Source of the DNA: Lytechinus pictus
Taxonomy: Eukaryota
Reading direction: 5' to 3'
Assembly (NCBI RefSeq): GCF_037042905.1
Contig: NC_087249.1
Coordinates: 52,328,001 to 52,392,000 of the forward strand
Length of the DNA stretch: 64,000 nucleotides
Shown: positions 6,416 through 35,797 of the stretch, one piece after another
How positions within the stretch are numbered: the first letter of the stretch is position 1
Layout: every line of letters begins with the position of its first letter
Translations under genes and position numbers: made by a program
Notes under the pieces: model-generated
The model's database searches: none
What the model saw: the letters and a program-made list of their open reading frames with translations, nothing else
Told to the model about the DNA's origin: nothing

Positions 6416-9400
6416 GTAAGTTAGATAGGGGTTTGCAGTCCTGCTGTTGGTGATAAGTAAGATGTTGTCACACCCATAAGAGACTGATTTTCCATTTACA
6501 GCCAAAGCAAAATGGAAACTCTGTTTTGGTTCTTTACTTTCATGTTCAAATTCATTGAACTTACCTTTGATGTGTACATTTTCTTTGACAAAAGAGAATT
6601 TCCATTTGGATCAAGTTTGAAACGGAATTACAGGTCTTAAGAAACGGAAAAGGCCTTTTTGTAAACGTAAACTCGTTGTCCCTACACCTTGACACTTTAG
6701 CAAAGGTAAGCCATTGTATGAGCTCTAGACATTTTATCATTACAATTCAATTCTTGGAAGAAAAAAATCAAAGAAAAGGAAACTTGATATCTAGAAATTG
6801 TTACAAGCTGTTAACAAATGTTCTTGTCATAGAAATAAGATTAAATTGTCCTACATGTATATAGTGCACATTACACATGTGCATGTACAGTACATGTATG
6901 CTTTGTTGTTGAAATTTTATTTTCTTTAAAAGGTTGCTTTATGATCCATATTAATATCAATATCGATCTTTCACACTCTTTTTCAGGTGATCTTCAGTTC
7001 TACAAGTGACATTACAAATGATCGACAGACCAGCGTATGTTCATCAAGTGATTCTACCTCCATTGTTGACTCTATGAACCCAGAGGGCAGCAAAGCAGAG
7101 GAGAGTGGCGATATACCAACACTCAAAGAGTTTGACTTTGAGGGAGAAGAAGTAGACAGAGAGGTATGCATTGATTTGGGTCAGGATGTGGTGATGATGA
7201 TGGTGATGATGATGACGACGAGGACGACAAAGACGATGATGATGATGATGATGGTAGAGGCGGTGATGATGATGATGATGGNNNNNNNNNNNNNNNNNNN
7301 NNNNNNNNNNNNNNNNNNNNNNNNNNNNNNNNNNNNNNNNNNNNNNNNNNNNNNNNNNNNNNNNNNNNNNNNNNNNNNNNNNNNNNNNNNNNNNNNNNNN
7401 NNNNNNNNNNNNNNNNNNNNNNNNNNNNNNNNNNNNNNNNNNNNNNNNNNNNNNNNNNNNNNNNNNNNNNNNNNNNNNNNNNNNNNNNNNNNNNNNNNNN
7501 NNNNNNNNNNNNNNNGATGATGATAATGAAGAGGATGATGGGTCAGGATGTGGTGATGATGACGNNNNNNNNNNNNNNNNNNNNNNNNNNNNNNNNNNNN
7601 NNNNNNNNNNNNNNNNNNNNNNNNNNNNNNNNNNNNNNNNNNNNNNNNNNNNNNNNNNNNNNNNNNNNNNNNNNNNNNNNNNNNNNNNNNNNGAGTAATG
7701 ATGAAGACAAAAGTTCCTTTCGGCTATTCCCCTGATTTGTATGTCTTTATTCAAGCACCCTTGACCTCTTAACAAAAAAAAAACATCTTTGTTTTATTTT
7801 CAGGATGGTAAAGGTTTTAACTGGTATGACAGCCGTCATTCTTTGGAGGATATTGATTCAAGTGGAGTGACAAACCCTGATCATGAGGGATCCAAATATT
7901 CATCAGAAGATGAGGTAAGAACTTAGGGACAGATACAGGATTCCATGAATGAGAGGAGACAGTAATTATTATATTTCAATGCAAAAAATGAACACTTCTG
8001 AAACAAATAAGAATGTAATTCCCCCCCCCCCCATGAGAAACGTGAATAAACAAAACAACCCAAAAAGAAAAATAAAGGAAAAAATCCCAATGAATTTAAC
8101 TTCTGGTATAAGGGAATGTAATTGATAAGATTTTATGATTTGTATGTAACGAATTCAATCACAACCCACTGTTATTTAGTATATTGCACTTATAAAAACA
8201 AATCAGCAAAAAATTATTGTTCTTTAGTTCTAATTATATAGCAACAATGAGTATTTTCATTGGTTGAAGTGTTCAGTCATTATTTCTAGATTTCTGATTA
8301 GATGTTACGTTTGTTGGGGTGTTGCTTGGATATCTAGTTACGTAAGTTACAACTTCTCAGAATACAGTTTTGTGAAAGTTCTAGTGTTGATATAACAGCA
8401 TTATAACACCATTACCACAAATTACAACAAAAGTTTATAACATTTTTCATACTACCTTGGGCCTAAATATCTCTCACGATGCTTGGATCCGTAGTGAAAT
8501 TGAAGATACAGCTCTCCCATGTTTTATCTGATTGATTCTATAACTTCTGTCATACAGACAAGTATATCAGGCGCTGATGATAATGCACCCAGTCTTGAGA
8601 ATAGTCGTATCTACTCAGGAATGTCTCAAGAATTCATTCCTTCACCAGGGGGCAGCAGCGTCATCCGAAGAACAGCGTCAGGATCATTATCAAGGTCAGA
8701 TATATTTCACTTTCATGCAGAAGTTAAAATTCATATAAGATAGTTTCTTCAATCAGCTGTAACTTTTAACTTTTTTAATGTGTTTATGTAGATAACTTCA
8801 TCAATGATCAACATTTTTGTACGTCCAACCCCATGTAGATAACTCCTTTAAAGTAATCAACTGTTTTGTACATCCTGCCTCCATATACATGAGTTAAATC
8901 ACAGATCTTGGTGACATTGCCAATGGGAGATGTAAAATTGGGTTCCAAAAGGAACCGATCAAACTATACAAGGGCACTGCACAAAATCCACATTATCAAA
9001 TTGAACAATATTTGTTACACATGCTAGCTCCGATAACCTTCACTAAGCACATGTGAATGATTAAGAGATTGGTTGAACCACAGAGAGGCTATAGCCCCTC
9101 ACATCAATTGATTTCAGAATCCAAAGTCACAAAATGGCAAATGAACGACCAATGAAAATGAGATGGACTTCCCAGTTTATCATACATTGTTCACATGCAT
9201 GTTAAGAGATTGGCTTAATCACAAAGAAGCTACAGGAAGTTAAAATCAAAATGATTTTAAATGACTAGAACTATCACACAGCCACAAACAGATTTCCAGG
9301 GATGTCCCGGTAAGCAGGGGATAATCTGAACACGGCATTTATCTGTGTGTGGCTGAGAGAGGTACACACAGACACGCACCATGATCAGATTATCCCCCGC

Positions 9401-12400
9401 TTACCGGGACATCCCATGGCAAGTTTGCATGAGGCTGTGTGATTGTTCCTGTCATTAAAAATTTTGATGTTAATTTCCTGTAGCTCCTTTGTGATTGGGC
9501 CAATCTCTAAAAGATGTTCGTGAAGGACATGTGTAACAAACTGGGAAGTTTGTTTAAGTCCATCTCATTTTCATTGGTCGTTCATTTGCCATTTTGTGAC
9601 TTCTGATTCTGAAATCAATTGATGTGAGGGGCTATAGCCTCTCTGTGATTGAACCAATTTCTTAATTATTCACATGTGCTTTAATAGTACAGATTATTGA
9701 GGCTAGCTTGTGTAAAAATATTGTTCATTTTGACTGAGTGGAATTTGTGCAGTGCCCTTGTATATTTTGATCAGTTTCTTCTGGAACCCAGTTTACATAG
9801 CATTAGGATCTCAGTATTCAAATGCCCATGACTTTCTTATTATTTATTAAATCTTCCTCAAACTTTCAATGATCCGTTTTCTTTGATTTTTCTTTTATAT
9901 ATGAATTCACCTGGCTTCAAGGTTTGCATTTTCTCTTTAAATGTTACTGAAATTTTTTTAGAAGTTTGTTTCATGAATTTGTGTTTTCAATTTGAAGTTT
10001 GTTTCAATCATTTAAATGTTTTCTATCCTAGTGGTGGTAGTGATATTGATAGCATCACATCCCCGATATGCAACTCACCCACCGCCAACTCGTCCTTCAT
10101 CTACATCCCCGTCGATGAGGTGGAAGAAGCCTGGCAGAGTCACGTTGACGCGGTCATGGGGGATACGAGCGGTCGTTTCGCCGTCAATACGTTCCATATC
10201 TTCACACAGCTGTATAAGGTCATGCAGCAGAGGTTCTGCAACCTGACGCGAGAGGCTTGCAATTACCTGGGTGATAGGATGAGAAGCATAGCACTTCAGT
10301 TCCATATCCTTTTAATTGGATCTCTTTGTTGAATTTACAAACGAATTGACGCACAACTGATGACTGTTACTTGTGCTACATGATATGTAAGATATCTCTA
10401 TGTCACTGGCATCTAAAGTTGTGCGTAAAGTCATGTAAAGTCATGCATAAATTAGAAACGTGTGTAAAATCCTTTGTAAAGTATTGCGTCTTTTTTAAAC
10501 AGCTTTATGAAGCACTACTCTGATATCATTAGGCCACTTACAGAGAAATATGTGTTGTCTGTCACCCAGGATGGAAGAGTTTTATGACAAACAAAGTCTG
10601 TGTAATGCACTGTATATTCCATCCATTGACTAAATATTAATACAGGCATTGACTTGCTCTCCTTGGCCAAAATGCTAGGAGCTGAGTGAGAATGTCATTT
10701 GTTTGAAGAGTATGATAGCTAGCTTCACTGATGTAATTTTATTTTTACAGTTTATTTCCAGTGCTTTTGATGATTGTAATCCGTTGCCATGGAAGCTGAA
10801 AACCCAAGATTTTACAAGATGATTTCATTGGTCGAGGCATGCAAGCATTACTGAGATAATCTGCATTCAATTTTAACGTGATATGATGGAAAAAACAATA
10901 TTACTTCGATATTCGAATATAATGCACTATAATTTAAAATTACTATTCTTTATAAAGAATATACCCCCTCATATCTTCATCATAGTTCTTATGAAGAAAG
11001 AAATAATAATAATGGTGGCTACTTATATAGCTTACAGGTGCACCTGCTCCACCTGCTCATGGCGCTTTAACAATGACCCTGCTATTATTATCACCCCAGC
11101 TAAGCTAGGGAACGGATTAAGGCACACACAGCTTTTTGAGGAATTACTTCCTGCCGGTACCCATTTACATTACTGGGTCGCATGCAGCACACAGTGGATG
11201 AATTCCTTACTGAAGGAAATTACGTCATGGCTGGGATTTGAACCCACGACCCTCTGTTTCAAAGTCCAGAGACTAATCCACTGGGCCACAACGCTCCATG
11301 AGATTAACAATCCTTATTGTCCTTAACCTTCTGTTTCACTGAATACCCTTGAAGTCCTGAGCACCCATGCTCTTTGTCCATTTGTCTATGTGGACACCGA
11401 GACCTTGATGATGTGTAGATTACTAGACAGCCATAAATACTGTGTGCTTGAACTCAATGAACACTACGATACATACATCTCAAAAAGGGACCTTACGGTT
11501 GAGGTAAGTCAAACTCTTGGGTCTGAATTCATTAAGATGATTTTGAATCCTTGGTTTGAACGCATGATTTATGCAGATTTTGTGCATTTGTTCATCTTAA
11601 TTCTGCATGTATATTGACAAAACATCCCACGATAAATGAAAGCTTTTGTCAAAGCACTTTAATTGATGCTTGTGATAAAAGCGGGTGTTCATTATTGGAA
11701 GTTTTCTAAATATATGCATTGAATTAAGCATAATTTATGAAATCTACATAAACTATGATTTCAAATCAAGGATTCAAAATTACCTGTGTGAATTTGCTCT
11801 TAAGGGGGATATTGGTATAAACTTAAAATACACAGCAAGTTAGTCAATTTTAGGGCTGCAAATCAATCATAAACCGTACATTCAATTACAGTGAATTGTT
11901 GGCCTGTTCCTATCGTTTGCAAGTTTGTAATCTGAATTTGTAATCAATAGCAAATTAGTTTTGTGCAAAACCCTCTTAGACTGGATTTTTACTTTATGGT
12001 TTTTGTTCCATTGGTTGTTTGATTTTAGCATCCGTGTCTGGGTCCTGTAACACAAAAAATGTGAATTATCATGCAGTTAGTCAGGTTGATTGATTGCACA
12101 TAATGATCAATGCAATCAATCATAGAAATCAGCACTAAGAACAATCACTGAACTTTGTTTTATGAAATCCACCCTCTATCTCTACCAATGCTTCAGCTTT
12201 TGAACCACTTTTCACAGTTAGAATTTATTGCATGACATGTTTCAGATAATGCATCCATTATTGTTTTAACATTCTAATAAAACCGTTGATTCCATTGACT
12301 ATTCTGCAACATTATTTTGTAGTCATAATAGGTGATAGACAACTTTGATAATAGATTAGATTTTCTGTATGTTGCCACCATAGCAGTAATATATTGTTCT

Positions 12401-12902
12401 TAGTATTGTATTAACATATTCAATGAGAAAACATTATGTTTAACTTCAGGGTTTTTTTGTCTTCAGAATTTAGATTTTTATTCCATGTCAATATTCAAAG
12501 AAGATTGAATTATGCATGCTGTCGGTCTTTATTGTGAGTTTGTACTTATGAATCTTTTGAGAGTAAAACAGAAAGGTGATATTTGAAAAAAATATGTTTT
12601 TATCTTTTATAGTGCCTGGATTCAATCAAAGCATCTTTGAAGAGGCAAACTCTCGTAGCTCATGTAAGTATATCACTATGTGCGTTTAAGTTCTTAGGTT
12701 TCAATAACATTTGATTCCTTCATAGAGCATCAATCAATCTGGATTGTTAAAGTATTAGTGAAAACCATTTGAAATTTCATAGGAATCTAACAAGTCTAAT
12801 ATTTGAGTTCCAAGAGCACTTAACAGATTGCATAAATACTGTTTGATATTTGCAAATGTTATTTGATATTCTAATTTTGGTAATAGTGATAATGATGTTG
12901 AC

Positions 12903-12959
<57 letters not shown>

Positions 12960-15900
12960 AAAGGTGGGAATATTAATGATGATGATGTGGATCATCTTTA
13001 AGAAGTAATTTTAAAAGATTTTGAACCAGAATAAATAATTGCAGCACTTTATTTTATTTTATTGTTGTCCATACAGGATATAAATGGCCCTACAGGAGAA
13101 GAACAGGTAAAAACTCAATTTTTCCCTCCTTTCTTATTTGTGTTACTAAAATAGGATTGTTTTTTATTTATTTAAAGAATGACATGATGAATACCTTATA
13201 TAAGGAATCCACAGCGTGTTGTGTATTCTATGGGTTTCATGTGTCTTTGACAAACTACTCTTTTCATTTTGGAATCTCTCCAGTATCTCTGATTTCTCCT
13301 TTGTTTTCTGAGGGTTCTTTTATCCAGGTTGTTGGTTCTCATCATTTAACTCATTTGGGACAGTTGATTAAATGAAGCATTATTTGATCATCTTTTATTC
13401 TTCCATTTGCAATGTTATAATTTCTCATACTCTGCTTCATATTCTTTTGAAAGTTTATGTCTTATAAATGGATAGAGACTGATGTAGAATGTCCAGAGAA
13501 GTGAATAAAACTCTCCACTTTGCATATAAAATGGTTTTACCTTTCTATTGTTTTGTCAAATATGAGTGTAAATTGATTATTTTCCCGTAAACACTTTTTA
13601 ACTTTGAAGCGTACCTATGTAAATAAAATGGACAAAGTATTTTAAAGATTAGTTTTTCTGTAACATATTTTGTAATTGTTATTATGGCAGAGCATAAATA
13701 GATATTGAACCAAACCAAGATACATGTATGATATAATGAAATAAAACTATTCTTTAAGCAGAAGATAGGTGTTACACTTCCATTTATTTTCCACCTTTTT
13801 TATTTATTGGTTTGATTTTAAAATATTTATATATAAAGTGCACTAGCTTTTTTTTTAAATGATAATAAAGAAGAATTAAGCTCTACTTGCTATTATTTTG
13901 TTTTATTTATTCAGTATTTAAAAAAAAAAGATTAAAGTTTATTAAAAAAAGTTTACTTCCCTATAACCCCAATATATTTATAGATGTAGCAGGAAAAGCA
14001 AAGACTTATTAGGGACCAAGGATGATTTTGCTCTCACAATGTTAAAAAAGAAAAATACTGCCTGTGTATTAAGTGTCCATGTTATTCACTATTGGTTGAC
14101 TATTGGTCAATTATGAAAAGTATTTTGTAATGAAATTATGTAGGGGGAAACTCTGTAAACAAAATAATATTTTCTATTGGGTTTAAGTTTTAGCGCACAA
14201 TAATTTCATACATTGCAAAGTCTTGGAGATAACCCATGATGATAGATATTGATAGAAGAAGGATACCTATATTTTTTATGAGTCTTTTAACCCAGTCAAA
14301 GCAATGCATACCTTGTTTTTCTTTCAAGAGTAGAATTGAATTTTCTCATTAGAGAGTTCTGTAGTTAACAAACAGGTGATATGTTTTAAGAAATGATTGG
14401 AATATTCAAAATAACAAATGATAAATGGAAACCAATGATGCAAATGATGTTGCAGCCTTCAAAGCCCTCTGGTTTCACTTGTGAATGTGGACGAGATTAT
14501 CAACTTTATACTTTGCATTATTCCCCAGGGTGTGGAAAATGATTGAACCCAATGATCTTACACTCTACCTTTATATTAAGGGCCTCATTGATAACTGGAC
14601 TATTATTATTATCTTACAGATGCAAGGAAAATAAAATGAAAAAAATAAAATACACTTCGTAATATGTGAATGCATGTAGAGCATTACAAGGAAACTTGTG
14701 AGAAAAATTAACACTAAGACTTGTTTAGAGAACTTTACATATTCACTTTAAATCCTGTGGTCTCAAGTTTTTCGTCCTTTTTGATGATTTTTGACATCCA
14801 AATGTATTTTTGCCATGATTCAATAATAGTAATCATTGAAATAAGTGATATAACAATAATAATAATGATATAGATAATCATTGAAAGATAATGACCCACA
14901 TAACCATGCAAATGATTTGATTCAGTCATAGCAATACCTTGTTCACAGTTCAATCACAAGTGAAATGATCGGGCTTAAAACAGGAGCTAGCTAGTCCTGG
15001 CTAAATGTTGATGTATCATAATAGAGAGCTGTAAAACTAACCAATGCTTCTAATACTAACCCTCAAACCAAACACAAAACACTCTGGGTAACAGGAGAGG
15101 GTCCATATTAACCATGTAAGTATATGCCTTATATTGCATGGCTTCCTGCTTTGCTTGCTTTCTCGCCTGCTTCCCTAAAAAAATATGAAAATAAAAACAT
15201 TAACAGATGAATATTTAACAAAAACGCGAGCAACCAGCCAAGCAGGGATATTATATTTTTCATATGTCTAGTTATGTAATCTTTCTAGGTGCCATTTTCA
15301 ATTAGATATTAAATGTACATGTAGCCCCTTTTTCAAATCAAATACAAATATTAACCTTCACGCTAGTGAGTTGCAGTAAAATGCAGGAGAATTTTGATAT
15401 CTAGAAACCTGTCTAATTTTCTAACTTGATTTAATTTAGATGTTAAATATAGTCCCGTTTTTAATTAAATGCAAACACTAGACCTTAATGAAAGCTGATG
15501 AGTTTTAGTAAATGCATATACTGTATATCAGAAATATTGGAAGGAAATTAATCACATCGATGGAAATCATCAAATGAATATTTATGTTTAATATTTATAA
15601 TATTTTAAAATATCATTTCAATCAAATTTTTAAAAAATCTTTGTGGTCGTAATCTATCATAAAAGTACATTGAAAATATGCATTATTTTCTCCATAAATT
15701 TCAAGTCATCCAATACTCTTCTATTGATAGAATGCAACATAATTGCTTTATTCTGAGGATGAAAAATTTAATTTTTTTAATGGAATTGAATCATCTGTAT
15801 AGCATATGAAATTGCACTTAAAAAAAACATACTTGATAAGTTGTCCATTCCTAAAAAGAGGAAATGATTTATCATATTGAAGAAATTAAATTGAATTTCT

Positions 15901-18900
15901 AATTATTCTGACCTCCGCTGCCAATACACCGCTGTTCTCACCTTGACTTCAATCAACCAATAAATTAAACTTGTCCCTTTATATGTGTAATAAAATACAA
16001 CATTTATTTATCTTTATTTTATTAATCACGTCTCTTGTATTTACTCCTCAATAGTCCTGTACGTGCATAGATATTTACCTGAGCAATATTTTCATATTTC
16101 AATCAAGTTAATCACAAAAAATGAAATATTGACCTGAAATAATTTGTCCTAATTATATTGATTTCTTTTTACCTTTCATAAGACATTTTTCTGCTCTATG
16201 ATTTTCAAACAATGATTTGTTCTTATGCATGAAATTACATTTTGCAAATTGTAATGTTTTTTCTCCCAATTTGCCTTTTTTTGCCTTGCCCCATTTGGCT
16301 TTGCTGCTTTCGAAACTCATTGTGTTTTATAATCAATGTTGTAATCAAACAAAGTAGTTATTGTGAATATTTGCATAAAGGACACATTATATAAAACAAT
16401 ACAATTTTAAACTTGCAATAAATGGCACATTGTTTCCATGGAAACCTTGATTTAAGCCCGTCTCACACTGTGCGATCCGATACGACATTATTTTTTTTTA
16501 AATCACATTTTGAATTAAATATGAAAGTTTCAAAAAGAAAAATTACTTTATTTGAAGTTCGGCATGTTTTGAATAATGAAATCATCATTTTGCTTCACGG
16601 CAAGCCCTGTTGTCAGAATAAAGTCCAAATCGGCTTCAAGTCGCAGCCGATGATGAGGTCATCATGATTATTGGATTTGCTTTTATTCCTACATTGAGGC
16701 TTGAACTACATTGAATTATGATTTCAGTAGTCCTATAACTATTATGACCTCGGATTGCTAAGATTTTATTTGTTGGAATGTTCATGTCAAATGTTATTAT
16801 GATTTCTTTGAAAATTGGATCTCAACAAATCACATAGTGTGAGCCGGGCTTTAGATTCCCTCTTAAGCATTATTACCATGTTACAATAGCATTGGTAGTA
16901 TTACTACAAAGGCTCAGTTTTGTACAACCAGAACCAGGTCTTTCATTTTTTGTTGTCGTTTTTTTACTTGTCAGTAACCTAATTTCTAATCAGTCCCATT
17001 TTCCAAATATACATAATCTGTACAGAAATATTTACCACAATTTCATGGCTAATCATTATCTGTATGAACATCATGTTCAGGGTTGGCTCAATAACTTTCT
17101 TCAAATACAATTACCATTATGTAATTGAAGAAATGTTAAGTTACAATTACTTTTGTCAATTACAATTTCAATTACTTTCTAAAAAAGTCATATCAATTAA
17201 ACCAATTTGTATTCTGTACATAGTACCACCTATTTCAACATAATTATATAAACTTACAGAGAAACTGACAAGATGAAGGTTTAAGTTTAAAGAGCATGGA
17301 TTCTGCCTGTTCTTTAATGCTGAAGCAGTTGACTTGAAAAAGTGTCATGAAATTATATGATACATTATGTAAGTTTATTATTGAATGTAATTAAAAGTAA
17401 TTGAATTCAATTACATTTTTTTCAATTACAATTACTTTCTCTTTCAAAATTTAAATGACAATTACGATTGAAATTACTCCAAAAATGTAATTAATTATGT
17501 AATTGATCAATTACCTTGTAAATGAGCCCAACCCTGGTCTTGTTTGAACATATAAGAGAAAGACCCCTTTTAAAAAAGTTTCAGAGTCCCTGTAAAAAGC
17601 TACTATTTCCCTGTATTTGATGTTTGATAAACTGTTGCATAGTTGTATCATAGTCGTATCATATCTTGTAAGGATAATAAACTGGAAGTTATGTTTCTTT
17701 ATTTCATAAAAAACAGACACCTCATGTAATTTTATGATATAAATCTTTGTATGATTACATTTAATTCCTTTTATTTTCTCCTATTGGATTGGTTAGCATG
17801 TAAAAAATGTTTTGATGATATCATCTATATACATGTATAATGTATAATCTACAGGTCTAAGAAAAAAAAGAGACTTTGTGTGTGAAGGCAATGGAAAGCC
17901 TCATGAAAATGTTTTACTTGATGTGCAACACAGTTCATTTGTGTCTCTACATATTACAGAAGTAATATATAGGTGTTTAAGTAATGCTAAATAATTGATT
18001 GTTGGTTTTTCCAGTTTTCCCTTATGATAATTTATGTGGAATGTATCATTATACTTATAATCTAGCTTATTATTTGTATCAGTGATATGATATTTTCAGT
18101 CTTTTATTTCTGACACAAATATTAATATGCTATTTCATTATTATATTGTGTGCATTTCAATATTTTTCAAAGTAAAAAAATCTTCACTTCTCTTTTTAGC
18201 TGAGAGTAATTCATTTCTCTTTTCTGATAGTTGTTCATTGTATAGTGGATTGATATGCAGTGTTAAAGAATTCATGACATTTGAATTGTTGTGACTTTTC
18301 ATTTTTCATTATGCTTGTGGTAGTGTATTTGAAACTGTGCATGAAAACTTGTTCCTTTTTCTCAAATGCTACAACGGTTTGTAATATTCATCAAACAAGC
18401 TGTGTTTGGTATTACAAATTAGTCATTAAATATAAAACTTCATGAAAACCATGAAAACATTAGGTGGAAACCATGATGAGTAAGATCCATTTTAGATATA
18501 AAGTGAATTTCATTCTTTTCTTAATTTAAAAAATACCGTCCATGGGGTGCATGTCCAGCTGGATTGAACACAATACCATTTCAGGGACCATATTTTTTTT
18601 GCACAATAATTGGCCTCTCAAAACTGTTGTTTCTAATCTGGCTGGATCTGCTCCTTAACTCCATGACTTTATAGTTTCACGATGGTTTGTACTCATGTAG
18701 CTAATGCAAGTGGAGGCTGTATCATGAAGATACTGATGATTGAAGAAAAACTTGCCAAGTAATTTTAATTATGGAAAGCCAACTGGTATTCTCAATTACA
18801 TTGCTAAGTTGTTATAGAAGCTCTATTATTATTTTCTTTACAATGTATTGGACAAACAAAACAATTTATTCATAGAAATACATAGTGATTATTAAAAGAA

Positions 18901-21900
18901 ATTTGACAATTTTCATATTTAACATAAGCATATATATGCAATAAAACAGTAATTGATAATGATTCAAATTGCCATGAATCAAGTCAATTTTATTATCTGT
19001 GATTAAAAAGTATTTGAGGATTTTCTGTTGCTTACCATATACATGTATAAAGTCAATTATTAGGGTTTCTCATTGAATATATCAACTTAAAATTATTTTT
19101 TATCACATGTGGCACACTATATATATATTAAGCCAATCATTGCTTTTATGTATACCTGCTGAATTAAAGAATATCTAATGATCCACTTTGGCTTTATACA
19201 TATCAAGTATTTCTTTATTTTTTAAGTCTCCTACATGATTCTGTAATTTCTGTAGATTTTGTACAGGGACCACCTATTTTCAGTTATCTTTGTGTAAAAA
19301 AAATATATATATATATATATTAGAATTACACTTGGCTTCCCTTATTACTTACTTTCCATGGTAATCAAAAGCTTAATTAAGCACTCTTTGATTTCCACTA
19401 TCTTTATTTCCCTTGATTTCTGTTTCTCTATATGACCACCTTGTTTTTCTCTTTCTATTTGTAGCAAATTGAGCTCTGTCGTCGCCTGTACCGTCTCTAC
19501 TGCCAACTGAGGATGTTGTTTGATAGCTACTGTAAACTGATTCATTCTCTAGAGGGCGCCAAGCATGGTCCACATGCCTCACATGTGAGTATTAAAATGT
19601 TCCAAGTTATTCACTTTAATAAATGATTGCTGAACTGATTCAGTCTGGCTCAACGTTCCGAGTATGGCACTGGCAATATTTACTGTACATGGCAAATGGG
19701 ATTTATCTTTTACAAAGTGTATTTAGTCTTTCAAAGCTTTTGTTTGTTTGCAAATTTTCTCTGCAGTGATTGATTGATTGATTGATCGATTGATTGATCG
19801 ATGCAAGAGCAGTGCGCATTTTAGCTTGCATGCAGCTTGAGCGCCACGATTGGGACTCCTTTTTTTTATTTTCAAATGTTGGCAGGCCTGCTATCTGCAT
19901 AGCAGTGTGCATTTTATTATGAAATACAGTTTTTTTGGGGAAAATACAATTTTTTTGTCACAGAATACAATTTTTCATTCCCAGAGGTTGGCAGGTCTGA
20001 TTTGCAAGTATGTCTATCTTTAAGTACAGTGTATTACACAAGAAAAAATATGATTTCTGTCTTGACTGTCTTGCAATCTCAAACAAGCTCAAGCTTAATT
20101 CATAAATAACTTTGAATTTCTATTTTCTGCTGCAGATTGTCGACTTCTCAGTGCTAGTCTGTGCAGCCAAGGAGGAACTGTGTCTTGCAGCTCAGGAACT
20201 AGAAAGTGGCCAGGTTGCATTGTCACCAGAGGGCGACACAGGAATCACCACACCTGAAGCAGCCGTTGTCACCTTGACCAATCATCTTGGACGAAGGGAT
20301 GTCAGACGGGCTCTCAGGTTCTTACATGTATACAGGTAAACATTGCATTTCCCACAAAAAAAATTATCCCTTGAAAATGATAGAAAAATCCAGCTCCTAT
20401 TAAGTTTTGTGGAATTTTCTTTGGACCATTATTTTATGCATCAGAATACAAATACATGTATATTCCAATTTTATATTCATGTATACATTGTAATTTTGAC
20501 TGTTTTGCTCTGCATAAATGAAATCTTTGTAGTGCATGTCGGCCTTATACATAGAAAAAAAAGGAAAAAATTGGCTTTCGTAATTTTTCTATGTTGAAAT
20601 CTTAAAATTAGATTACAAAGTTGACATCTTGAAAAATTTGAAGTGAAATTGGGTGTTAAATATGCAAATATTGTTTTTCATAGTGCTGCAAGTCAGGCGC
20701 CATGTTCGGGTTCGGTTCGGTTCGGCAAGGTTCGGCAGAAATTTGCCGAACATTGGTTCGGTTCGGGGTTCGGTAATGATAGACTGATAAAGCTATAGGC
20801 CTAGTTCATTCAGGTATACGTAGCGTACCGGTAGACAATTTGTACTTGATTGACTGCATGTGCTCGCGTGTACCTCTGTCACATCAAACCATTTTATCTC
20901 TATCTTGTTGACATGAGACTATGAAAGTTATAGCGCTCAACGAATCAACTGTTATCTCGAATTTGATTATCTGATGACATATTTATTGGGTAACTCACAG
21001 TTCTAAAATGGCGACTCTTCCTAGTCGTCCATACCTGGACCACACTTTGGATACTTGCCAAATTAACTACGCTCGCACTCCAGCGCATGCAGTCCCCGGC
21101 CTTGTAGCGGGACTCTGAGCTCATGAATATTTATATATACTAGTACAGTCCGGCCAAACGTGATTGGCATCACATACGAGGCGGCCATGCCAGCGCCAGT
21201 GCACTGAACTGTAGGCATAGTAGGGCCAGGGGCGTGTCGAAGAAAGCGTGCTTATGTAATGCGCCTTTCGCTAATTGGCTCGATGGGTGAACTAAACCAC
21301 CAATCGCATGTCGCTGATTGTCGTATCGGTACATGCAGCCACGTGCTTTGTCTGCTCGCGAAACTCAGCTCACTGATTGAAGAGCAATTCCCGAGATTTC
21401 TATGATTTCATTGGTCAGATTTCATTCGACCATGAACATACAGACCAAGTGGGATGCAAAGTTTTACGACTGCAATGGGACAGGGGGAGTAGAGTGATCA
21501 TCGCATTGTTTATGGTTAATTTGAGAAGTTGATAAGATTGGGGGTCATTTTCCCCCAAGAGATGAATGTTTCCGCATGGCTTTATCTTCATTCAACTTGT
21601 CAACGAGGGGAAGGGGATCTTGCTATATGCTTTACCGTAATCATTCATGAGTGTTTGATTTTTATTTTCATCTGATTGTTAATAATAAAAAAGATAACTT
21701 CACCTCATCTCATTTCTATATTATTTGTTTTGCGTCTCTCCTTTCCATCTCTAACAGTCACTCACTTTATTTCCCACTTTCACTGGATCTCTCGTTTTCA
21801 AAACTCTTTACTTCTCTCTAAAATCATGAAAACTAGACAGTAGCGAGCCGACACCTCAATAATAATGTCAATCACCTCAATCAGATCTTTATTCTCCGCC

Positions 21901-24900
21901 GCAACAATACACGAGTTACGATCTTAATCACATCGTATCGTAATTCGTAATATTAATGGTACTTCATCTTTCACTTTCAGTTTATTGAGCTCGTTCATTC
22001 AAAATACTTTGAAGATTTTCAAACAAGAATCTTGTTCGCCACCTAAAAACAACAATATTTTAGATAATTAGATTTAACCAATGAACACATGTGACACATA
22101 CAGTTTTGGTTTTCTTTACCATGCTTCGGCGATTCGGCCACAGAGCGAGAGATGATGAAAGCCAGTAAAATGATTATAGCGCAAGCTCGCGCAACATCAT
22201 TCATCGGATCTCCTTTCTTAATCAGGGCCGTAAAAACCACAATGTCAACATGAAAATGAAAACAAAATCTAGTAACCGCAAAATAAGCGCATACTTCCAA
22301 CATACAATTGCAAAGAAGATTAAATAGAGAATGCGCAAATATAATGATTAGAAAGGGTGTAAACTTATAAATTTATTAGCTGAAAGCCGTTTTTTTTTTT
22401 TTTTGCCGAACTTCCGAACCGAGTCTTAGTGTTCGGTTCGGTTCTGTTCGGTTCGGAAGTGCCATGTTCGGCGAACTACCGTTCGGTTCGGCGGTTCGGC
22501 TACAGCACTAGTTTTTCACTAATAAATTTGCATATTTTATTCATAATAAATGAAAAAAAATTATTTTCAGATTTTTTTTTATACTGGCTTTTTTTATACT
22601 GACGTTCATGTGATAAAGAAAGTGCGTGCCAAATTTATGCGCAAACGGCGGCCAAGATCACCCCCCCCCCTTCAGTCCTCAATGCATCTCAAATAGCCCA
22701 GTCCTTTTAGGGTTAAAGTATGATTTCTGATATTTCCTAGATGGTCATCTATCTATTATCCATTATGAACTGAACATGCAATCATGGGATAATGTTCATG
22801 ACATAGGAGTATGAACCCAAATCACAAGTTGATCAAGTTTTCAATGAACTTTCTTTATCTTGACCATTCATAATGATGTGGTAATAATAATAATATGTTC
22901 ATTTATATAGCGCTCTTACAATATATCATTGTTTCACAGCGCCTTACACAATAGAAAATTATAATAACTAATACATGTTAATATTATTGATTAAAAAGCA
23001 GAGTCTTGAGATGTTTCTTAAATACTTCCAAAGAAGGAGAAAGTCGCATATATCTTGGAAGGTCATTCCAGAGTCTTGGGGCACATGTCTGAAAAGCGTT
23101 GTCACCTGCTTTAGTATTTGTCCGTGGAATATGGAGTAGAGTAATGTCCGTACTCGAGCGTAGCCCGGGACGTTCTGACTGATGTAGGCGGATGAGAGAT
23201 TTCATGTAGTGTGGAGCTTCATTATGGACAATCTTGAAAACAATGGTCATAATCTTAAAGACAATACGTTGCTTCACTGGAAGCCAATGCAACTCTCTTA
23301 ACAGAGGAGTAACATGATCGTGCTTACGAGCTTTGAAAATCAACTTGGCTGCACGGTTTTGGACCCTCTGAAGACGTTGCATCTGTGACGAGTTGATTCC
23401 ATACAAGAGTGAATTTGCATAGTCAAGACGTGACAATACAATGGCTCGAACAGCATGTTCACATACCTTGGCAGTTATGTAGGGTCTAATGCGGGCTATG
23501 TTCGAAAGCTGACAATGAAGTCCCCGACAAAGTGCTGAAACTTGTTTATCCATTTTTGCCTCTAAAGTTTCCTACCCCTATTCTCGTTAATAATACTTTG
23601 TGTCAATTATCTTTGATTATGTTTTTAGGTCAATGTGGTCTGGTGAGCTCTTTGGTTCCAGTGAGGAAGATGATCAGGATGTTCTCTTGGCTTTACTATG
23701 TAAACAACTTGCTGATGGCAGGAGTGGTATGTAATTGATTTAAGTTTATGGCAGGGGGGTGTTCATAAAGCAAGTCATTATTGAGTTACCCCTAGTCGGT
23801 AAAATGTAAAGGAATTTACTGAAATGCAATAAGTTTTTGATTTTTAACTCCGTCTATAGTATTTCTAATATGTTTTCCAAAATAAATTTATGTTAATTAT
23901 ATTAACCCATTGGCTATGGAAACCAGTTGGTAGCTGTACAATTTAGAGCAGGCAGTAGTAAGAAGCTTATACTTTGAGCATCTGCATATTTCAAAGTATT
24001 GGAAAATATATATGAATGAGAATGAAGTGATGAAGGTGCTTTATAAACATCTCATGTCTGCTGTCTAACTTTTTGAATATAATTTGAGTGATCATTGTGG
24101 AGGTGTTGTGGCTCAGTGGGTAAGTCTCCAGACTTTAAACCGCAAGATCTATGGTTTGAATCCCACCGCAGCACTCTTGTCTTTTGGCAAGGTGTTTATC
24201 TACATTTGCCACTCTCCACCCAGGTGTAGTGAATGGGTATCCAATAGGAAGAAATTGATTGAATGCTCGAGCGCCTAATCAGGGTAGCCGTGCTAAGAGT
24301 ATGCTATGGTTAGAAACGTCGTATTAAGTGTTGTATTAAGGAAACCAGAATACAAGGAGAGAATCCGTCTTATCAGAAAGAGTAAAATTAGAGGAGCAAT
24401 CTAAAATTTGTTTCATCAAAATCATTTGTAGAATAAGTGAGTTATGAAAGTCTGAAAATTATTGTTGTACTTTCTATGGGGATTCTCAAATTTGCAAACA
24501 TGCTTCAAAATGGCTGATTTTGTGGACAACTCTCCATTTGTTTTGTACACAATTTTCAGATTTTCCCTGTTATCTTTCAAATTGCATCTTGCCTCCTCCT
24601 GTATGATGATACACCAACCTGGTGGACTGTACTTTAACGGATGATGATGATGACCTTGCCATAATGTGGTGTAAATTATATTTTCCCATGACATATCATA
24701 TATTATGCTCAGAAGGAGGCAAGATGCAAATTGAAAGATAACAGGGAAAATCTGAATATTAGTGTACAAAACAAATGGAGAGTTGTCCACAAAATCTGCG
24801 ATTCTGAAGCATGGTGGCCAATTCGAGGATCCCCATAGAAAGTATAACTAGACTTTTTAAATGCCCATAACTTGCTTATTTCTTAACCAATTTTGATGAA

Positions 24901-26295
24901 ACTCGTTTTAAATTGTTCCTCTCATTTTATTCTTTTCCATTGATTGCTTCTCTTCTTGAGTTTTGGTTTCCTTTATTGTTGCACATTATTATTATTGTCT
25001 TGACAGAGTGCTTTTAACATCATGCTTTACATAATTTACACAAGAGGTTCAACCTGGATGAATATATTGATTGTTCTCTTTTTCTTTGATCAATATTAGG
25101 TGTTCTAGTGATCTCAAGGTCAGGCCAGGAGCTCCAGACAGCATGCCACAAACTGATGGACATAAACGCTCAACTCAAAAAATCCATCAAAGTCATTGAA
25201 AACCTGGAAACCAAGGAAGAGGTGGAAGAGAAGAGTGAGGTAGAGAAGGCGGAAGGAGAAGGACCAGGGAAAGGTGACGAGAAAGTTAAGATGAGGAGGA
25301 AAGGCAACAGGAAGGGGAAGAATGATGGAAGGAAGAGCTGGAAGAGCGATGGGGATAGAAGCTCAAAGGAAGGAAGCGGGGAGGCCGGTCAGGGCGTCAA
25401 AAGCGGACGGGGTAATGATGAGAAGAAGAAAGGAAAGGAGGATAAGAAGGGGAAGCAGGAAAAGAAAAGATCCAGCAAGGAACTGACACCAGAAACTACT
25501 GGAACGGAGGAGAGGAATGATGGGAAAGGAAAAGATGGAAAAGGTGGGGAGGGAGAAGATTCGGAAGTTGTCGTTGTCACGGTGACGAGCGATGAAGGGG
25601 TGGGAGGTGATGTCGAGACGAAGGAAGCAAAGATTGTATTCCAGAGCAACGAGGGTGTGGAGAGTGAAGGGGTTGAAGGGCGCAAGGTGACGCTTGATAC
25701 CAAGGGGTCAACTGAGAACATGGAAGAAGTGAAGGTTGAGGATGTGACATTAAAGGATGCATCCAGCGGTAAGGCTGATGGAGAAGGGGTGGAAGGTGGC
25801 AGCGAAACCAGAACAATTGATGAGGAGGAGGTGGAGTCTGACTTGACCGCTCTCATTGAAGCCATTGAGGAAATGGAGGAAAAGGAGGAGATGGTGAATA
25901 AAGACAAAATGGAAGCCCTACCCTTGAAACTCACCGATGATGAAAACACCAGTACTGGTGCAGCAGGGGCAGGGGTTGAACCCTCCTCTCCGGCCAAAGG
26001 GGAAAGTTTTGCCCCCCTTCCTGACATGGATAGTGGCGTCATGGCCGAGACTCCAGACTCTCAAGCACCTGACAACAAAACTTCCTTCACCGATGATGTC
26101 CCACTGGATATTCAGGTCACACCTGCAGAAGAGGACAAACTCTTTCCTCCAGACAAGGAGCCATTGAGGAAGGGGTCAACGGGAGAGACAGAGAATGAGA
26201 CGGAGAAGAAGGCTCTTGGAATCACCGAAGATGTTTGGCAGAAAGATCCCAACTCCAGACCAACATCTGGAGAAAGTCTTTGCACAGAGCTTTAG
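6110..26295 (+). CDS. fry: Protein furry homolog (FRY/FRYL family), 3' portion; spliced, 5' end outside window
   Basis: Exons 6110-6415, 6987-7163, 7804-7914, 8558-8694, 10032-10303, 11340-11503, 12613-12663, 13077-13106, 19465-19584, 20136-20335, 23629-23726, 25100-26295 join in frame (2862 nt). Peptides WRKPQQSQRRTRERIL..GLPRSPSVIFSS, KEFDF, GFNW, CPFVYVDTETL, ELCRRLYRL..DSYCKLI and RSMWSGELFGSSEEDD..CHKLMDIN match the Furry C-terminal region as I recall it from vertebrate FRY/FRYL. Confidence 0.9.
6987..7163 (+). CDS. fry: furry exon (VIFSSTSD...KEFDFEGEEVDRE)
   Basis: ttttcag acceptor, GTATGC donor, phase 0-0. Confidence 0.85.
7186..7705. repeat. (GAT)n-rich microsatellite region with two assembly gaps (N 7282-7515, 7565-7692)
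   Basis: Direct observation; lies in a furry intron. Confidence 0.9.
7804..7914 (+). CDS. fry: furry exon (DGKGFNWYDSRHSLEDIDS...EDE)
   Basis: ttttcag acceptor, GTAAGA donor, 111 nt; FNW..SL.DID motif. Confidence 0.85.
8558..8694 (+). CDS. fry: furry exon (TSISGADD...SGSLS)
   Basis: catacag acceptor, GTCAGA donor; phase 0-2 matches next exon. Confidence 0.75.
8930..9798. mobile_element. About 870-bp foldback/hairpin element in a furry intron
   Basis: Arms of about 430 bp are imperfect reverse complements, e.g. CAAAATGGCAAATGAACGACCAATGAAAATGAGATGGACTT and its mirror; very short central loop near 9355. Confidence 0.85.
10032..10303 (+). CDS. fry: furry exon (GGSDID...EACNYLGDRMRSIALQF), ends at U12 AT donor
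   Basis: cctag acceptor, phase 2; ends at ATATCCTTT. Confidence 0.88.
10304..11339 (+). other. U12-type (minor spliceosome) AT-AC intron of furry
   Basis: 5' ATATCCTTT at 10304; branch site TCCTTAAC at 11320-11327; 3' end TTCAC at 11339. Splicing gives ...CAG TTC C|TG AAT ACC (QFLNTLEV), in frame. Confidence 0.92.
11003..11299 (-). mobile_element. tRNA-derived SINE inside the U12 intron
   Basis: Minus strand TGGAGCGTTGTGGCCCAGTGG (A box), GGGTTCAAATCCC (B box), body, (ATT)n tail. Confidence 0.8.
11340..11503 (+). CDS. fry: furry exon (LNTLEVLSTHALCPFVYVDTETL...RDLTVE)
   Basis: AC acceptor, GTAAGT donor; conserved CP.V.VD.ETL and VLELNEH.DTY motifs. Confidence 0.9.
12613..12663 (+). CDS. 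fry: furry exon (CLDSIKASLKRQTLVAH)
   Basis: ttttatag acceptor, GTAAGT donor, 51 nt, phase 0-0. Confidence 0.8.
12903..12959. repeat. (GAT)n microsatellite
   Basis: About 19 perfect GAT units. Confidence 0.95.
13077..13106 (+). CDS. fry: furry 30-nt small exon (DINGPTGEEQ)
   Basis: atacag acceptor, CAG|GTAAAA donor, phase 0-0. Confidence 0.65.
15095..15115 (+). CDS. fry: candidate alternative 21-nt furry microexon (ERVHINH)
   Basis: ACAG acceptor with weak pyrimidine tract, CAT|GTAAGT donor, phase 0-0; TACTAAC upstream, TGCATG and YGCY cluster downstream. Confidence 0.5.
16455..16850. mobile_element. PIF/Harbinger-type MITE
   Basis: AGCCCG(T/G)CTCACACT(G/A)TG TIRs with TTA on both flanks. 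Confidence 0.75.
17078..17536. mobile_element. hAT-type MITE with AATTAC subrepeats
   Basis: CAGGGTTGG(G)CTCA TIRs; degenerate 8-bp TSD ATCATGTT/GTCTTGTT. Confidence 0.65.
19465..19584 (+). CDS. fry: furry exon (QIELCRRLYRL...GPHASH)
   Basis: Long pyrimidine tract plus gtag, GTGAGT donor, 120 nt; ELCRRLY and YCKLI motifs. Confidence 0.9.
20136..20335 (+). CDS. fry: furry exon (IVDFSVLV...LRFLHVYR)
   Basis: tgcag acceptor, AG|GTAAAC donor, phase 0-2. Confidence 0.85.
20681..22510. mobile_element. Non-autonomous hAT-type DNA transposon (1.83 kb)
   Basis: TIR TAGTGCTG(C/T)A, perfect 8-bp TSD GTTTTTCA (20673-20680, 22511-22518), subterminal GTTCG(G) arrays at both ends, no transposase ORF. Confidence 0.88.
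22882..23553 (-). mobile_element. 5'-truncated L2/CR1-group LINE 3' end (ORF2 C-terminus)
   Basis: 189-aa ORF with SRLDYANSLLYG..LQRVQNRAAKLI..HVTPLLRELHWLPV..APRLWNDLP..FKKHLKT.LF, then short 3' UTR and (ATT)n tail. Confidence 0.9.
23629..23726 (+). CDS. fry: furry exon (SMWSGELFGSSEEDD...DGRS)
   Basis: ttttag acceptor, GTATGT donor, phase 2-1. Confidence 0.88.
24098..24330 (+). mobile_element. tRNA-derived SINE related to the 11003-11299 copy
   Basis: TGTGGCTCAGTGG A box, GGTTTGAATCCC B box, shared ATGGGTA core. Confidence 0.7.
24339..24972. mobile_element. Palindromic MITE (AGGAAACC..GGTTTCCT, TTA(A) target; Kolobok-like)
   Basis: Terminal inverted repeats plus long internal inverted arms (about 24465-24600 versus 24715-24845). 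Confidence 0.75.
25100..26295 (+). CDS. fry: furry terminal exon with long charged low-complexity tail
   Basis: attag acceptor, phase 1; begins GVLVISRSGQELQTACHKLMDINAQLKKSIKVI; open for about 398 codons to TAG. Confidence 0.88.
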
Positions 26296-31491: not shown

Positions 31492-34400
31492 ATGGCGGTC
31501 AATTGCTCTAAACTCTGCGGAAGCTGCTTAGGAGGGGAATGGAGAAAACACTCTCAGAAGATTTTTCTGGCCGTCTATTTAGTAATCGCAATCGTAGCGT
31601 TTGCTCTGACAATATGGGAGACCGTCGTCACCTCTATGAATTCTGATGATCCGGTAAACTATCTTTGGTTTGTTGCTGGGATATCGGCACAACTCGCTAC
31701 CGCCATCTCATTTTGGAATATCTTCAATCACCTGGTTTATTACTCAAAACCAAGCCAACAGAAATATATAGTCAGGTATGAATGGCATGAAATCCAATTC
31801 ATGATGCTAAATGCCGAATAGTGGATTTTATAGTAGGCCTTGTTCAATATGTTAAATGCAAGATGGTTCTAAGAAGGAATTAAGGATTTAAGTTACACAT
31901 GATCCCTAAAAGGGTACTCCAAAAGTATTTCAAGTATTAATATATTAATGTCAAATTAAAGCAAAACATTTAATAGGCTCTTTTGCGTTATAGAATACGT
32001 CACTGTAACATAAGACATTTCAGATTTTATGATTTTGAGAAAAGTTCATGCTCCAAAAGTGATTAACATGATTATTGGTTTATTTATTTTACATTCAAGT
32101 ACTGATGTCCATCGTTATCGGCAATTAAGTGTCGGGCGATATTTATGAAAAACAAATAGGATTAGTAAAAAAAAAAAAGATAAATAAATGAATATACCTG
32201 ATAATATGATTTTGATTCAAGGAAGCAAACTATGAATTCTTAATTAATGGTTGATGCAAAGACCGCCTTATATACATTGCTATGATATCACAGTCTTTTG
32301 GGTGGACTTTGGAAGGTATACAAGAAAATGAATATACACGTGTGATGATGATTTTATCTCATCTTATCTTCTTTTATTACAGAATGCTAGGTATTGTTCC
32401 CGCTCATAGTATCAATTGCGTGAGTATAATTGGGAAGGAGATGTTGTTTGTTATTATTTTCTTTCATTAAGTCATATAAGACTCATAAACAGTACGATTT
32501 TTATTAAGTTATTCGTCAGGGTGACTCAAGTAGATTTTTCATTTTCCGTTTTGTCCAAAAATTTGACAAATATCAAAACAGTCTGTTTGTCAAAAGAACT
32601 TCTATCACAAGCAGAAAAGCTTTAAACTTGTATCGTATATATGAACATTTGATCTTTTGAAGTCTTCAAAAATATGGACCCGTATTCTTATATCCAGTTA
32701 AACTGTGGTTTAAATCAGGATTGATTACGAGTACCCACATGGGACACATTCTATGAGCGCATTTGGCGCTCTAAAGATACTTTAATTATCTAGGAATTAT
32801 ATCATTTCTTCACCATAAGCATGAGAAAATATTTCAGTAAGTTGAATGAAGTATAAGCAAAGTTTTGTCGGTTGCAGGTAACTGACAAATTGACAAGCAA
32901 CAGGAAGGATATGTCTTCTCTCCAAAAGGGACATATTTTCATCCTGAATTCCAAATGAGGGAAGGGGTACAATACCGGGGGGTGGGCACTTTACATCCTC
33001 TGTATGTCAGTAAGGTATCCCTTTGTTGATGTACAACAATCTTTATTATTGTTATTCTCCAATGTAGTGGTTTTCGATCAAGTTCGTTAAGTCGGCCATC
33101 TATCTGGATACGATACGAAATTTCTACCAGGCTGTTGTTATCTACTGCTTTATGTCTCTTCTATTGGTTTACCTGAACGAAACATTCGACGATCTGGAGA
33201 AAATCCTCATCAGCAGACCGAAATTTAAACCACAACCACCGTGCTGCTGTGTAAAAGCCGTCCCAAACAAAAGGTATATTTTATATTTTAATCCTGTAAT
33301 CCTGTCCGAAAAAAATAATCGTCAAGGAGAAATGCGTCTATCAGAACGCCTGAATATGAATTTAATTCCATATCTTTATGTAGACAAATTACAAAATAAA
33401 ATGGGGTTCAATAGACAGTATATGTAAATAACATGTATATCATCTGCTGCTATGGTGATCCTTATGTTTTCAGGCCTATCCAAAATTGATTTATCATTTT
33501 ATCATGATCATAGGAGACTAAATTATACATGTACGCTTATGTTGTAAAGATCGGGTCTACTATTAACTAACTTATGGACACTATAAAAGGGCCCCGCAAC
33601 AAATACATTTTTTTTTTAAATGAATCATTGATTGGTCATGATATTTTGGTTATCATTTTTTTTATGAATGGTCACTATGATTCAAATCTATGCTTTCTAA
33701 CCTAGGGTATAATAAAAGACTTCGAATAATCCCTCCTTACTAAAAACGATCCTTATGTGTATATCATTTAAAAATATGTTTATGTAATCAGTATCTGTAT
33801 CTGTTTTGGTAGATTAATTGGAAGATGTCGAGCCGGTGTTCTTAACTATACTATACTCCATCCAATTATCACGATATTAACTATGTAAGTACAGCTCAGC
33901 TTTACATTATTCTTGTTGAAAGGTATATTGCTGTCGGAGTTGGTAAATGTAAACTATGTGTAAATCTTTATTTGGCAATTGCTTACTACTATCTGACTAT
34001 TTCGTGTTTCAATGATCTCGAATGTTCATTACCTTGATTTCTTGGCCATAAATTAGGTTATCGGGGGCCGGGTCAGGGTGAACGATGTTTGGAGAAATTG
34101 AAGATTATTCGAAGCTATCTGCAGTGTGTCGCGCTGTATACGTACTAAGAAGGTGATGCCCGATTTTGATTGGTGAAAAGTTAATCACGTGATAAAAGTT
34201 TTTGCCGGTCAAACACAAGATGGCGTTCTGTATTTCACTGCACATCATCAATGTTTGGAGTTAGAGAGAACTATGTGTATTATGCTGTACTATCTTCGAG
34301 GAAGAGTCGTTGTGTAGTCCTATACACTCTAAAAATGAATCAGTGCTAACTGCACTTCAGAGTGCTGATCCCCCCTTTTTTAGTGTACTATCAGATTAGA

Positions 34401-35762: not shown

Positions 35763-35797
<35 letters not shown>

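Follow-up and report, generated by a model that had tools for sequence, protein, structure and literature searches.

A probable, evolutionarily old cassette microexon in furry that is missing from the gene models of Lytechinus sea urchins

Does a long intron of the furry gene in the sea urchin Lytechinus pictus hide a very short exon, and if so, how old is this exon and which splicing factors could act on it? The question is raised by a 64,000-nucleotide (nt) stretch of contig NC_087249.1 (assembly GCF_037042905.1, positions 52,328,001 to 52,392,000 of the forward strand), hereafter the window. A reading of its letters (the original prediction) had proposed a hidden 21-nt exon, encoding the peptide ERVHINH, together with a regulatory cassette similar to those recognized by QKI, RBFOX, and MBNL. 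We conclude, with a probability of roughly 0.82, that positions 15095-15115 of the window are a genuine and evolutionarily old alternative cassette microexon of furry, missing from the current Lytechinus models. The assignment to QKI, RBFOX, and MBNL is unproven, and the vertebrate counterpart of the exon appears to point instead to SRRM3/4, a regulator that the original prediction had not named.

The window has the composition of AT-rich animal DNA and contains two runs of N (7282-7515 and 7565-7692). Open reading frame (ORF) fragments on its plus strand match the Pfam family Fry_C (PF19421), with three exons scoring 30-59 bits against the curated cut-off of 25.9, and the exons that flank the candidate lie above this cut-off. 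An exhaustive HMMER search seeded with one exon of the window recovered full-length furry proteins, and in tblastn the exons of the window match L. pictus furry, XP_063955306.1, with an identity of about 100%. By these matches the window carries the 3' part of L. pictus furry, that is, its final ~12 exons, with the stop codon at 26293-26295. The exon chain, drawn using the sequences of relatives as guides, is given in Table 1 together with the intronic features discussed below. The exon encoding DINGPTGEEQ and the exon encoding QIELCRRLY are directly adjacent in the L. pictus protein; the latter ends at 19584 and is followed by the boundary GT at 19585, which corrects the original prediction.

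Between these two exons, acag, GAGAGGGTCCATATTAACCAT, and gtaagt provide the letters of an acceptor, an exon, and a donor at 15095-15115. The exon is 21 nt long, and thus within the 27-nt limit for microexons, its length is a multiple of three, it has no stop codon, and its splice sites are canonical AG and GT. The exon, its splice sites, ACTAAC at 15036, TACTAAC at 15054, the A/C-rich tract, and TGCATG at 15135 are all located where the original prediction had placed them. The furry gene here has three very small exons in a row, of 51, 30, and 21 nt, and the 30-nt exon is itself skipped in isoform X5 of Asterias rubens and missing from the sea-cucumber and hemichordate models. The acceptor is a tandem one, CAG/GAG at 15092-15097, and use of its second AG would yield an 18-nt in-frame variant encoding RVHINH; this tandem acceptor was found in four echinoids and not in starfish.

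Table 1. Coordinates of the furry exons and intronic features in the window
Feature	Positions	Strand	Basis
Exon A of furry	10032-10303	+	
Exon B of furry	11340-11503	+	
51-nt exon of furry	12613-12663	+	
30-nt upstream exon DINGPTGEEQ, phase 0-0	13077-13106	+	Match to XP_063955306.1 and orthologues
Host intron of the microexon, 6,358 nt, between the 30-nt exon and the helix exon	13107-19464	+	
Upstream conserved intronic block: ACTAAC 15036-15041, ATGCTT 15044-15049, TACTAAC 15054-15060	14981-15062	+	Identity to L. variegatus over 82 nt
A/C-rich spacer with few pyrimidines, closed by the 3' splice site acag	15063-15094	+	Within the 64-nt AG exclusion zone
21-nt alternative microexon ERVHINH, phase 0-0	15095-15115	+	Orthologous to annotated echinoderm cassettes
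Downstream conserved intronic block: GTAAGTA 15116-15122, TGCATG 15135-15140, GCTT/YGCY cluster 15147-15171	15116-15183	+	Identity to L. variegatus, block in S. purpuratus
Second downstream conserved element, GCGAGCAACCAGCCAAGCAGGG	15226-15247	+	Kept in L. variegatus and S. purpuratus despite a deletion in between
Distal conserved block with TGCATG at 18338, possible distal regulatory element	18248-18373	+	blastn against S. purpuratus, E 7e-10
Helix exon QIELCRRLY (QIELCRRLYRLYCQLRMLFDSYCKLI...), start of the conserved Fry_C helix	19465-19584	+	Pfam Fry_C positions 507-541; match to XP_063955306.1

The main evidence for the microexon comes from other echinoderms. Furry proteins from public annotations, in collections clustered at 90% identity, were aligned at the junction between ...EEQ and QIELC.... 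An insert is present at this point in Strongylocentrotus purpuratus (ERVHINQ in isoforms X1, X2, X6, X7, X8, X10, and X12, absent from X5), Diadema antillarum (ERVHINQ; the D. setosum model is without it), Asterias rubens and A. amurensis (DLTHINN, absent from X3), Patiria miniata (EMTHINT, absent from X2), Acanthaster (EMTHINN), the sea cucumber Apostichopus japonicus (DVIHINS, absent from X2), and the crinoids Antedon and Anneissia (an 18-nt exon encoding QLFLNL, absent from Antedon X2). Thus both the inclusion and the skipping isoforms are annotated in S. purpuratus, Asterias, Patiria, Apostichopus, and Antedon, and the predicted microexon is borne out as an orthologue of annotated alternative cassettes in sea urchins, starfish, sea cucumber, and crinoids. 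In genomic DNA, the syntenic exon, bounded by AG and GT, lies between the orthologous flanks in L. variegatus, S. purpuratus, D. antillarum, A. rubens, P. miniata, Antedon mediterranea, and A. japonicus. Outside echinoderms, the hemichordate Glandiceps talaboti has a 15-nt microexon encoding DEIFV at the same furry junction (locus L007, 70276-70290); it is preceded by ACTAAT at -62 and -27 and followed by the donor GTAAGTA.

The closest annotated case is the S. purpuratus cassette (XP_030836886.1 with ERVHINQ, XP_030836890.1 without it), which shares with the L. pictus exon the gene, the intron, the splice sites, and the branch-point module. The flanks are conserved and 20 of the 21 exon bases are identical; the differences are the last codon, CAT (H) in Lytechinus instead of CAA (Q), and the downstream TGCATG instead of CGCATG. 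The S. purpuratus cassette is annotated, whereas no Lytechinus gene model contains its counterpart. In the full-text literature on FRYL and furry microexons we found no description of an echinoderm furry microexon, and the vertebrate events appear there in supplementary tables only.

Conservation within the intron leads to the same place. The L. pictus intron fails to align with that of S. purpuratus over most of its length, and by far the best block in blastn is 14942-15193 (E 1e-44). The intron blocks that align between the two Lytechinus species, L. pictus and L. variegatus, show 81-83% identity; the longest identical run, 15084-15183 (100 nt), takes in the exon and its 5' splice site together with TGCATG and the GCTT/YGCY cluster, and the second-longest, 14981-15062 (82 nt), contains both ACTAAC sites. 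The microexon is identical in the two Lytechinus species and differs from that of S. purpuratus by its last base alone. The exon and its flanks thus form the strongest conservation peak of the intron, above its background, and the original prediction, which had staked itself on such a peak at 15030-15250, is not refuted. Together, the comparisons establish, at the level of sequence, the identity of the exon, its orthology, its alternative use in relatives, and the conservation of its flanks.

Other conserved islands of the intron are located at 18248-18373, 17982-18060, and 13217-13344; one holds TGTGCATGA, kept in three urchins, and another matches L. variegatus exactly over 79 nt. None of these islands contains an exon of any annotated isoform. 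A repeat or transposon origin of the conserved block around the microexon was considered and rejected: no repeat family covers the block, and an inverted repeat resembling a miniature inverted-repeat transposable element (26-nt arms at 14462-14487 and 14951-14976, 81% complementary, enclosing 463 nt) stops at 14976, just upstream. A search of the intron for known RNA families in Rfam gave a single chance-level match, elsewhere in the intron.

Several points weigh against the reading of 15095-15115 as a functional microexon. An open, frame-preserving unit of 3-51 nt between AG and GTAAGT occurs in 36% of first-order Markov shuffles of the intron; by itself, then, the exon syntax lacks significance, and it was rejected as evidence. 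None of the L. variegatus isoforms X1-X8 nor the single L. pictus model carries the insert. The last exon base of Lytechinus is derived (A to T, Q to H), the A being ancestral because Diadema has it. A predicted hairpin over the 5' splice site, described below, could lower inclusion in Lytechinus. Finally, the proposed effect on the protein is drawn from a medium-quality model of a vertebrate paralogue and not from the urchin protein.

The first of these points is what one would expect if the locus were a chance pseudo-exon, that is, a functionless decoy pair of AG and GTAAGT. We regard this as very improbable and already contradicted, because the exon is annotated in relatives, is found at the same junction in nine species, and coincides with the conservation peak of the intron. 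It is conservation and the annotated orthologues, not motif counts, that raise the finding above chance.

The other points about Lytechinus would suit a relic, an exon kept in the sequence and still used in Strongylocentrotus, Diadema, and other classes but rarely or never spliced in Lytechinus. As no listed Lytechinus model contains the insert, "hidden" is an apt description of the exon there. In addition, a predicted hairpin specific to Lytechinus (15112-15142) pairs the 5' splice site CCAUGUAA with UUGCAUGG, and two substitutions relative to S. purpuratus, the A to T change of the last exon base and the C to T change that creates TGCATG, close two mismatches of this hairpin and would bury the 5' splice site. 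The energy of the hairpin, however, does not go beyond that of shuffled sequences (z = -0.12), the reading frame remains open, and the exon, splice sites, branch point, and ~180 nt of flank are identical in L. pictus and L. variegatus, in the longest such runs of an intron that is otherwise 81-83% identical. Moreover, short exons are easily lost by read aligners and model-building pipelines. We therefore consider a relic improbable, and use of the microexon in Lytechinus itself, as judged from its sequence, most likely.

How could such an exon be recognized? The pyrimidine fraction at -28 to -4 is 0.40, the lowest of the seven exons measured, and the AG exclusion zone extends over 64 nt, headed by TACTAAC (candidate branch A at -36) with ACTAAC farther upstream. 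These are the only two ACTAAC sites of the intron, both within 60 nt upstream of the microexon, and TACTAAC occurs once on the plus strand of the entire window. The module ACTAAC-ATGCTT-TACTAAC can be aligned with S. purpuratus, both ACTAAC sites are kept in Diadema, and ACTAAY is found within -75 to -25 in seven of nine species, against a background of 0.3-0.7 per kb. The four echinoids and the hemichordate carry two copies apiece, and each starfish carries a single one. The length of the spacer varies among species, with a 10-nt indel relative to L. variegatus. ACUAAY is most simply read as a strong distal branch point that makes up for a very weak polypyrimidine tract, TACTAAC being the likely branch point. 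We suggest that recognition relies on GTAAGTA, which matches the 5' splice-site consensus, and on a distal UACUAAC, a perfect branch-point sequence with a second ACUAAC upstream; this pair heads the AG-free zone, and together these signals would offset the near absence of a polypyrimidine tract.

The original prediction had read the same letters differently: ACUAAY would bind QKI or another HOW-like STAR protein, and the downstream UGCAUG and YGCY motifs would bind RBFOX and MBNL, respectively, resulting in muscle or neural regulation. In its favor, ACTAAC-N13-TACTAAC has the form expected of a bipartite STAR site, which four echinoids retain and to which two ACTAAT correspond in the hemichordate. 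On the other hand, the ACUAAY sites occupy exactly the position required of a branch point, heading the AG-free zone, so that recognition by SF1 and U2 explains them without QKI. Downstream, five YGCY motifs fall within 15147-15171, and the combination of two ACTAAY, GCATG, and five YGCY occurs at only one locus in the window on either strand; the motifs were chosen after the sequence had been seen, and this inflates the apparent uniqueness of the combination.

The conservation of the downstream motifs is uneven. GCATG at +19 to +21 is confined to Lytechinus (TGCATG) and S. purpuratus (CGCATG), and is missing from that position in Diadema, starfish, and crinoid. Within 300 nt downstream, GCATG is present in five of seven roughly independent lineages and the full TGCATG in four of seven, a modest enrichment (rough binomial p ~0.02 and ~0.007, respectively), and the further TGCATG at 18338 is kept in the alignment of three urchins. 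The GCTT/YGCY cluster is common to Lytechinus and S. purpuratus only, that is, to camarodont urchins; it is absent from Diadema, starfish, sea cucumber, crinoid, and hemichordate, and in starfish CATTCC repeats lie in its place, so that no conserved MBNL-type cluster is seen. Compared with known cassettes regulated by RBFOX, QKI/STAR proteins, or MBNL, the urchin locus has motifs of all three classes at the positions where such factors act, but only ACUAAY, which doubles as a branch point, is broadly conserved, while GCAUG is moderately recurrent and YGCY is limited to one clade. Of the proposed cassette, then, the presence of the motifs, the wide retention of ACUAAY, and the modest recurrence of GCAUG stand; ACUAAY is nevertheless more simply a branch point, and regulation by these three factors together seems unlikely to us. 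The regulatory sequence would more generally comprise the ~80-100 nt conserved on either side of the exon, including in camarodonts the downstream GCAUG and the GCUU repeats.

Conserved RNA structure around the exon was also considered. RNAalifold proposed a helix between branch point and exon and a hairpin between the 5' splice site and GCAUGG, both with essentially no covariation, and the single-sequence folding energy is no better than that of shuffles; conserved structure is therefore retained as no more than an idea.

A counterpart of the urchin microexon exists in vertebrates. FRYL isoforms of sturgeon, paddlefish, frogs, lungfish, birds, and mammals differ by the segment QMEILA or QMEVLA right before ELELCRRLY, which bears out the vertebrate 18-nt microexon named in the original prediction. 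The segment is present in 78 of 99 cluster representatives and missing in 21, and a FRY fragment has QMESLA at the same junction. In Polyodon FRYL, another alternative segment, the three residues ELQ, lies ~390 residues upstream of QMEILA. Published tables list an 18-nt and a 9-nt microexon of mouse Fryl (MmuEX0019677 and MmuEX0019673) as eMIC-dependent (PMC8797185, supplementary file 4), and the inclusion of the human FRYL 18-nt exon HsaEX0026468, measured as percent spliced in, rises from 5.3 to 92.5 on SRRM4 expression (PMC7935315, S4 Data). The QMEILA and ELQ segments fit this published pair of SRRM4/eMIC exons in length; ELQ is probably the 9-nt exon, and the 18-nt VastDB event may be identified with QMEILA from its length and its relative position near the 3' end of the gene.

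In both echinoderms and vertebrates, the insert lies directly before (E/Q)(L/I)ELC, in phase 0. The urchin and FRYL exons share the junction, the phase, the preservation of frame, the alternative use (annotated among urchins in S. purpuratus), and the position in front of the (E/Q)(L/I)ELC(R/Q)RLY helix; they differ in length (21 nt and 18 nt), and ERVHINH and QMEILA are alike in hydrophobic pattern only. A further difference is that the FRYL exon is reported to depend on SRRM4 and eMIC, whereas the urchin exon has no UGC near its 3' splice site.

This counterpart suggests that the urchin exon could be a neural microexon, spliced in chiefly in neurons by way of the eMIC domain of Srrm234, a single protein in invertebrates. 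The published dependence of the mouse and human exons speaks for it, as does the fact that QMEILA/QMEVLA is the sole six-residue alternative segment in the vertebrate FRYL isoform sets compared. In flies and mammals, eMIC-dependent microexons combine a strong distal branch point and a weak 3' region with a long AG exclusion zone (PMC8797185, section 10), and the urchin exon resembles them in its very short length, weak 3' splice site, long AG exclusion zone, and strong CUAAY branch point. It differs in lacking the hallmark UGC close to the 3' splice site and the UCUC-rich tract. No TGC falls within the final 45 nt before the exon in L. pictus (the nearest is at -50), UGC is found there in four of nine species, about the background frequency, and the tract is A/C-rich. 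As an SRRM4 signature, UGC near the 3' splice site was therefore discarded, not being enriched in the species flanks compared. In addition, the link between the VastDB exon and QMEILA comes from length and position rather than from sequence, and most isoform models of S. purpuratus include the exon, unlike what is expected of a narrowly neural one, though isoform counts are not abundances. On balance, we treat control by Srrm234 as a tentative possibility, the strongest of the alternatives weighed here and still short of even odds.

How old is the microexon, then? The "ancient" reading of the original prediction is favored, as the junction and the phase are shared by echinoderms, the hemichordate, and vertebrates. 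No insert was found at this junction in amphioxus (12 isoform models) or arachnid models, and a nemertean has an alternative 54-nt cassette there. QMEILA, QLFLNL, DEIFV, and xxxHINx have only a loose hydrophobic spacing in common, and the shared junction may thus reflect either a common origin or repeated exonisation at one intron. More speculatively, and with somewhat less confidence than we attach to Srrm234 control, there could have been a single switch predating the split of Ambulacraria and chordates, which would have tuned the same end of the Fry_C helix for more than 500 million years, driven in echinoderms by an ancestral neural programme based on Srrm234/eMIC or RBFOX. Given the nemertean cassette, such a switch could be older still.

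With the microexon included, the protein would gain ERVHINH, seven residues inserted in frame after ...GPTGEEQ and before QIELCRRLY..., where the long conserved Fry_C helix has its N-terminal end; skipping would join the 30-nt exon straight to the helix exon. No Furry structure was found in PDB by sequence. AlphaFold2 was applied to a C-terminal fragment of a vertebrate FRY (P0027; mean predicted local distance difference test score 60.8, 73-91 in the relevant stretch); in the resulting model, QMESLA (227-232) lies inside a long helix (223-265) that follows a low-confidence loop and runs into LELCQRLYKLHFQLLLLF. By analogy, the urchin insert may add some two turns to this helix at its N-terminal end and alter its link to the preceding helix.

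Several other features of the window were observed. The furry intron at 10304-11339 is a U12-type AT-AC intron; its 5' end reads C/ATATCCTTT, its branch site TCCTTAAC lies ~12 nt before the 3' end, ...CAC/TG (the slash marks the boundary), and all seven echinoderm loci examined share these signals. This intron explains the "HIL(F/L)" tails of truncated database proteins as read-through. A long (GAT)n microsatellite occupies 12895-12960, in the intron upstream of the 30-nt exon. A 189-residue ORF on the minus strand within a furry intron (22984-23553) has no Pfam match and looks like the tail of a retroelement ORF. Downstream of furry, the exons of a neighboring plus-strand gene (31492-36241) match the Pfam family Solute_trans_a and resemble OSTalpha/TMEM184. 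An inverted duplication of 761 nt (53547-54307 and 57718-58478, 98% complementary, 3.4 kb apart) encloses many shorter related inverted repeats between its arms.

Furry is a scaffold of NDR/Tricornered kinase signaling in cell and neurite morphogenesis. FRYL has been linked to a human neurodevelopmental syndrome (PMC13387927). A microexon at one junction, from the hemichordate and all sampled echinoderm classes to vertebrates, would mark a surface that matters for the function of the Fry_C region, itself poorly understood. The finding would also correct the gene models of L. pictus and L. variegatus, both laboratory model urchins, and it could serve to test whether neural microexons are regulated in Ambulacraria in the vertebrate manner. 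If a single ancient switch did exist, the urchin exon would allow a vertebrate neural microexon and its conserved target site to be studied in a tractable animal outside the chordates.

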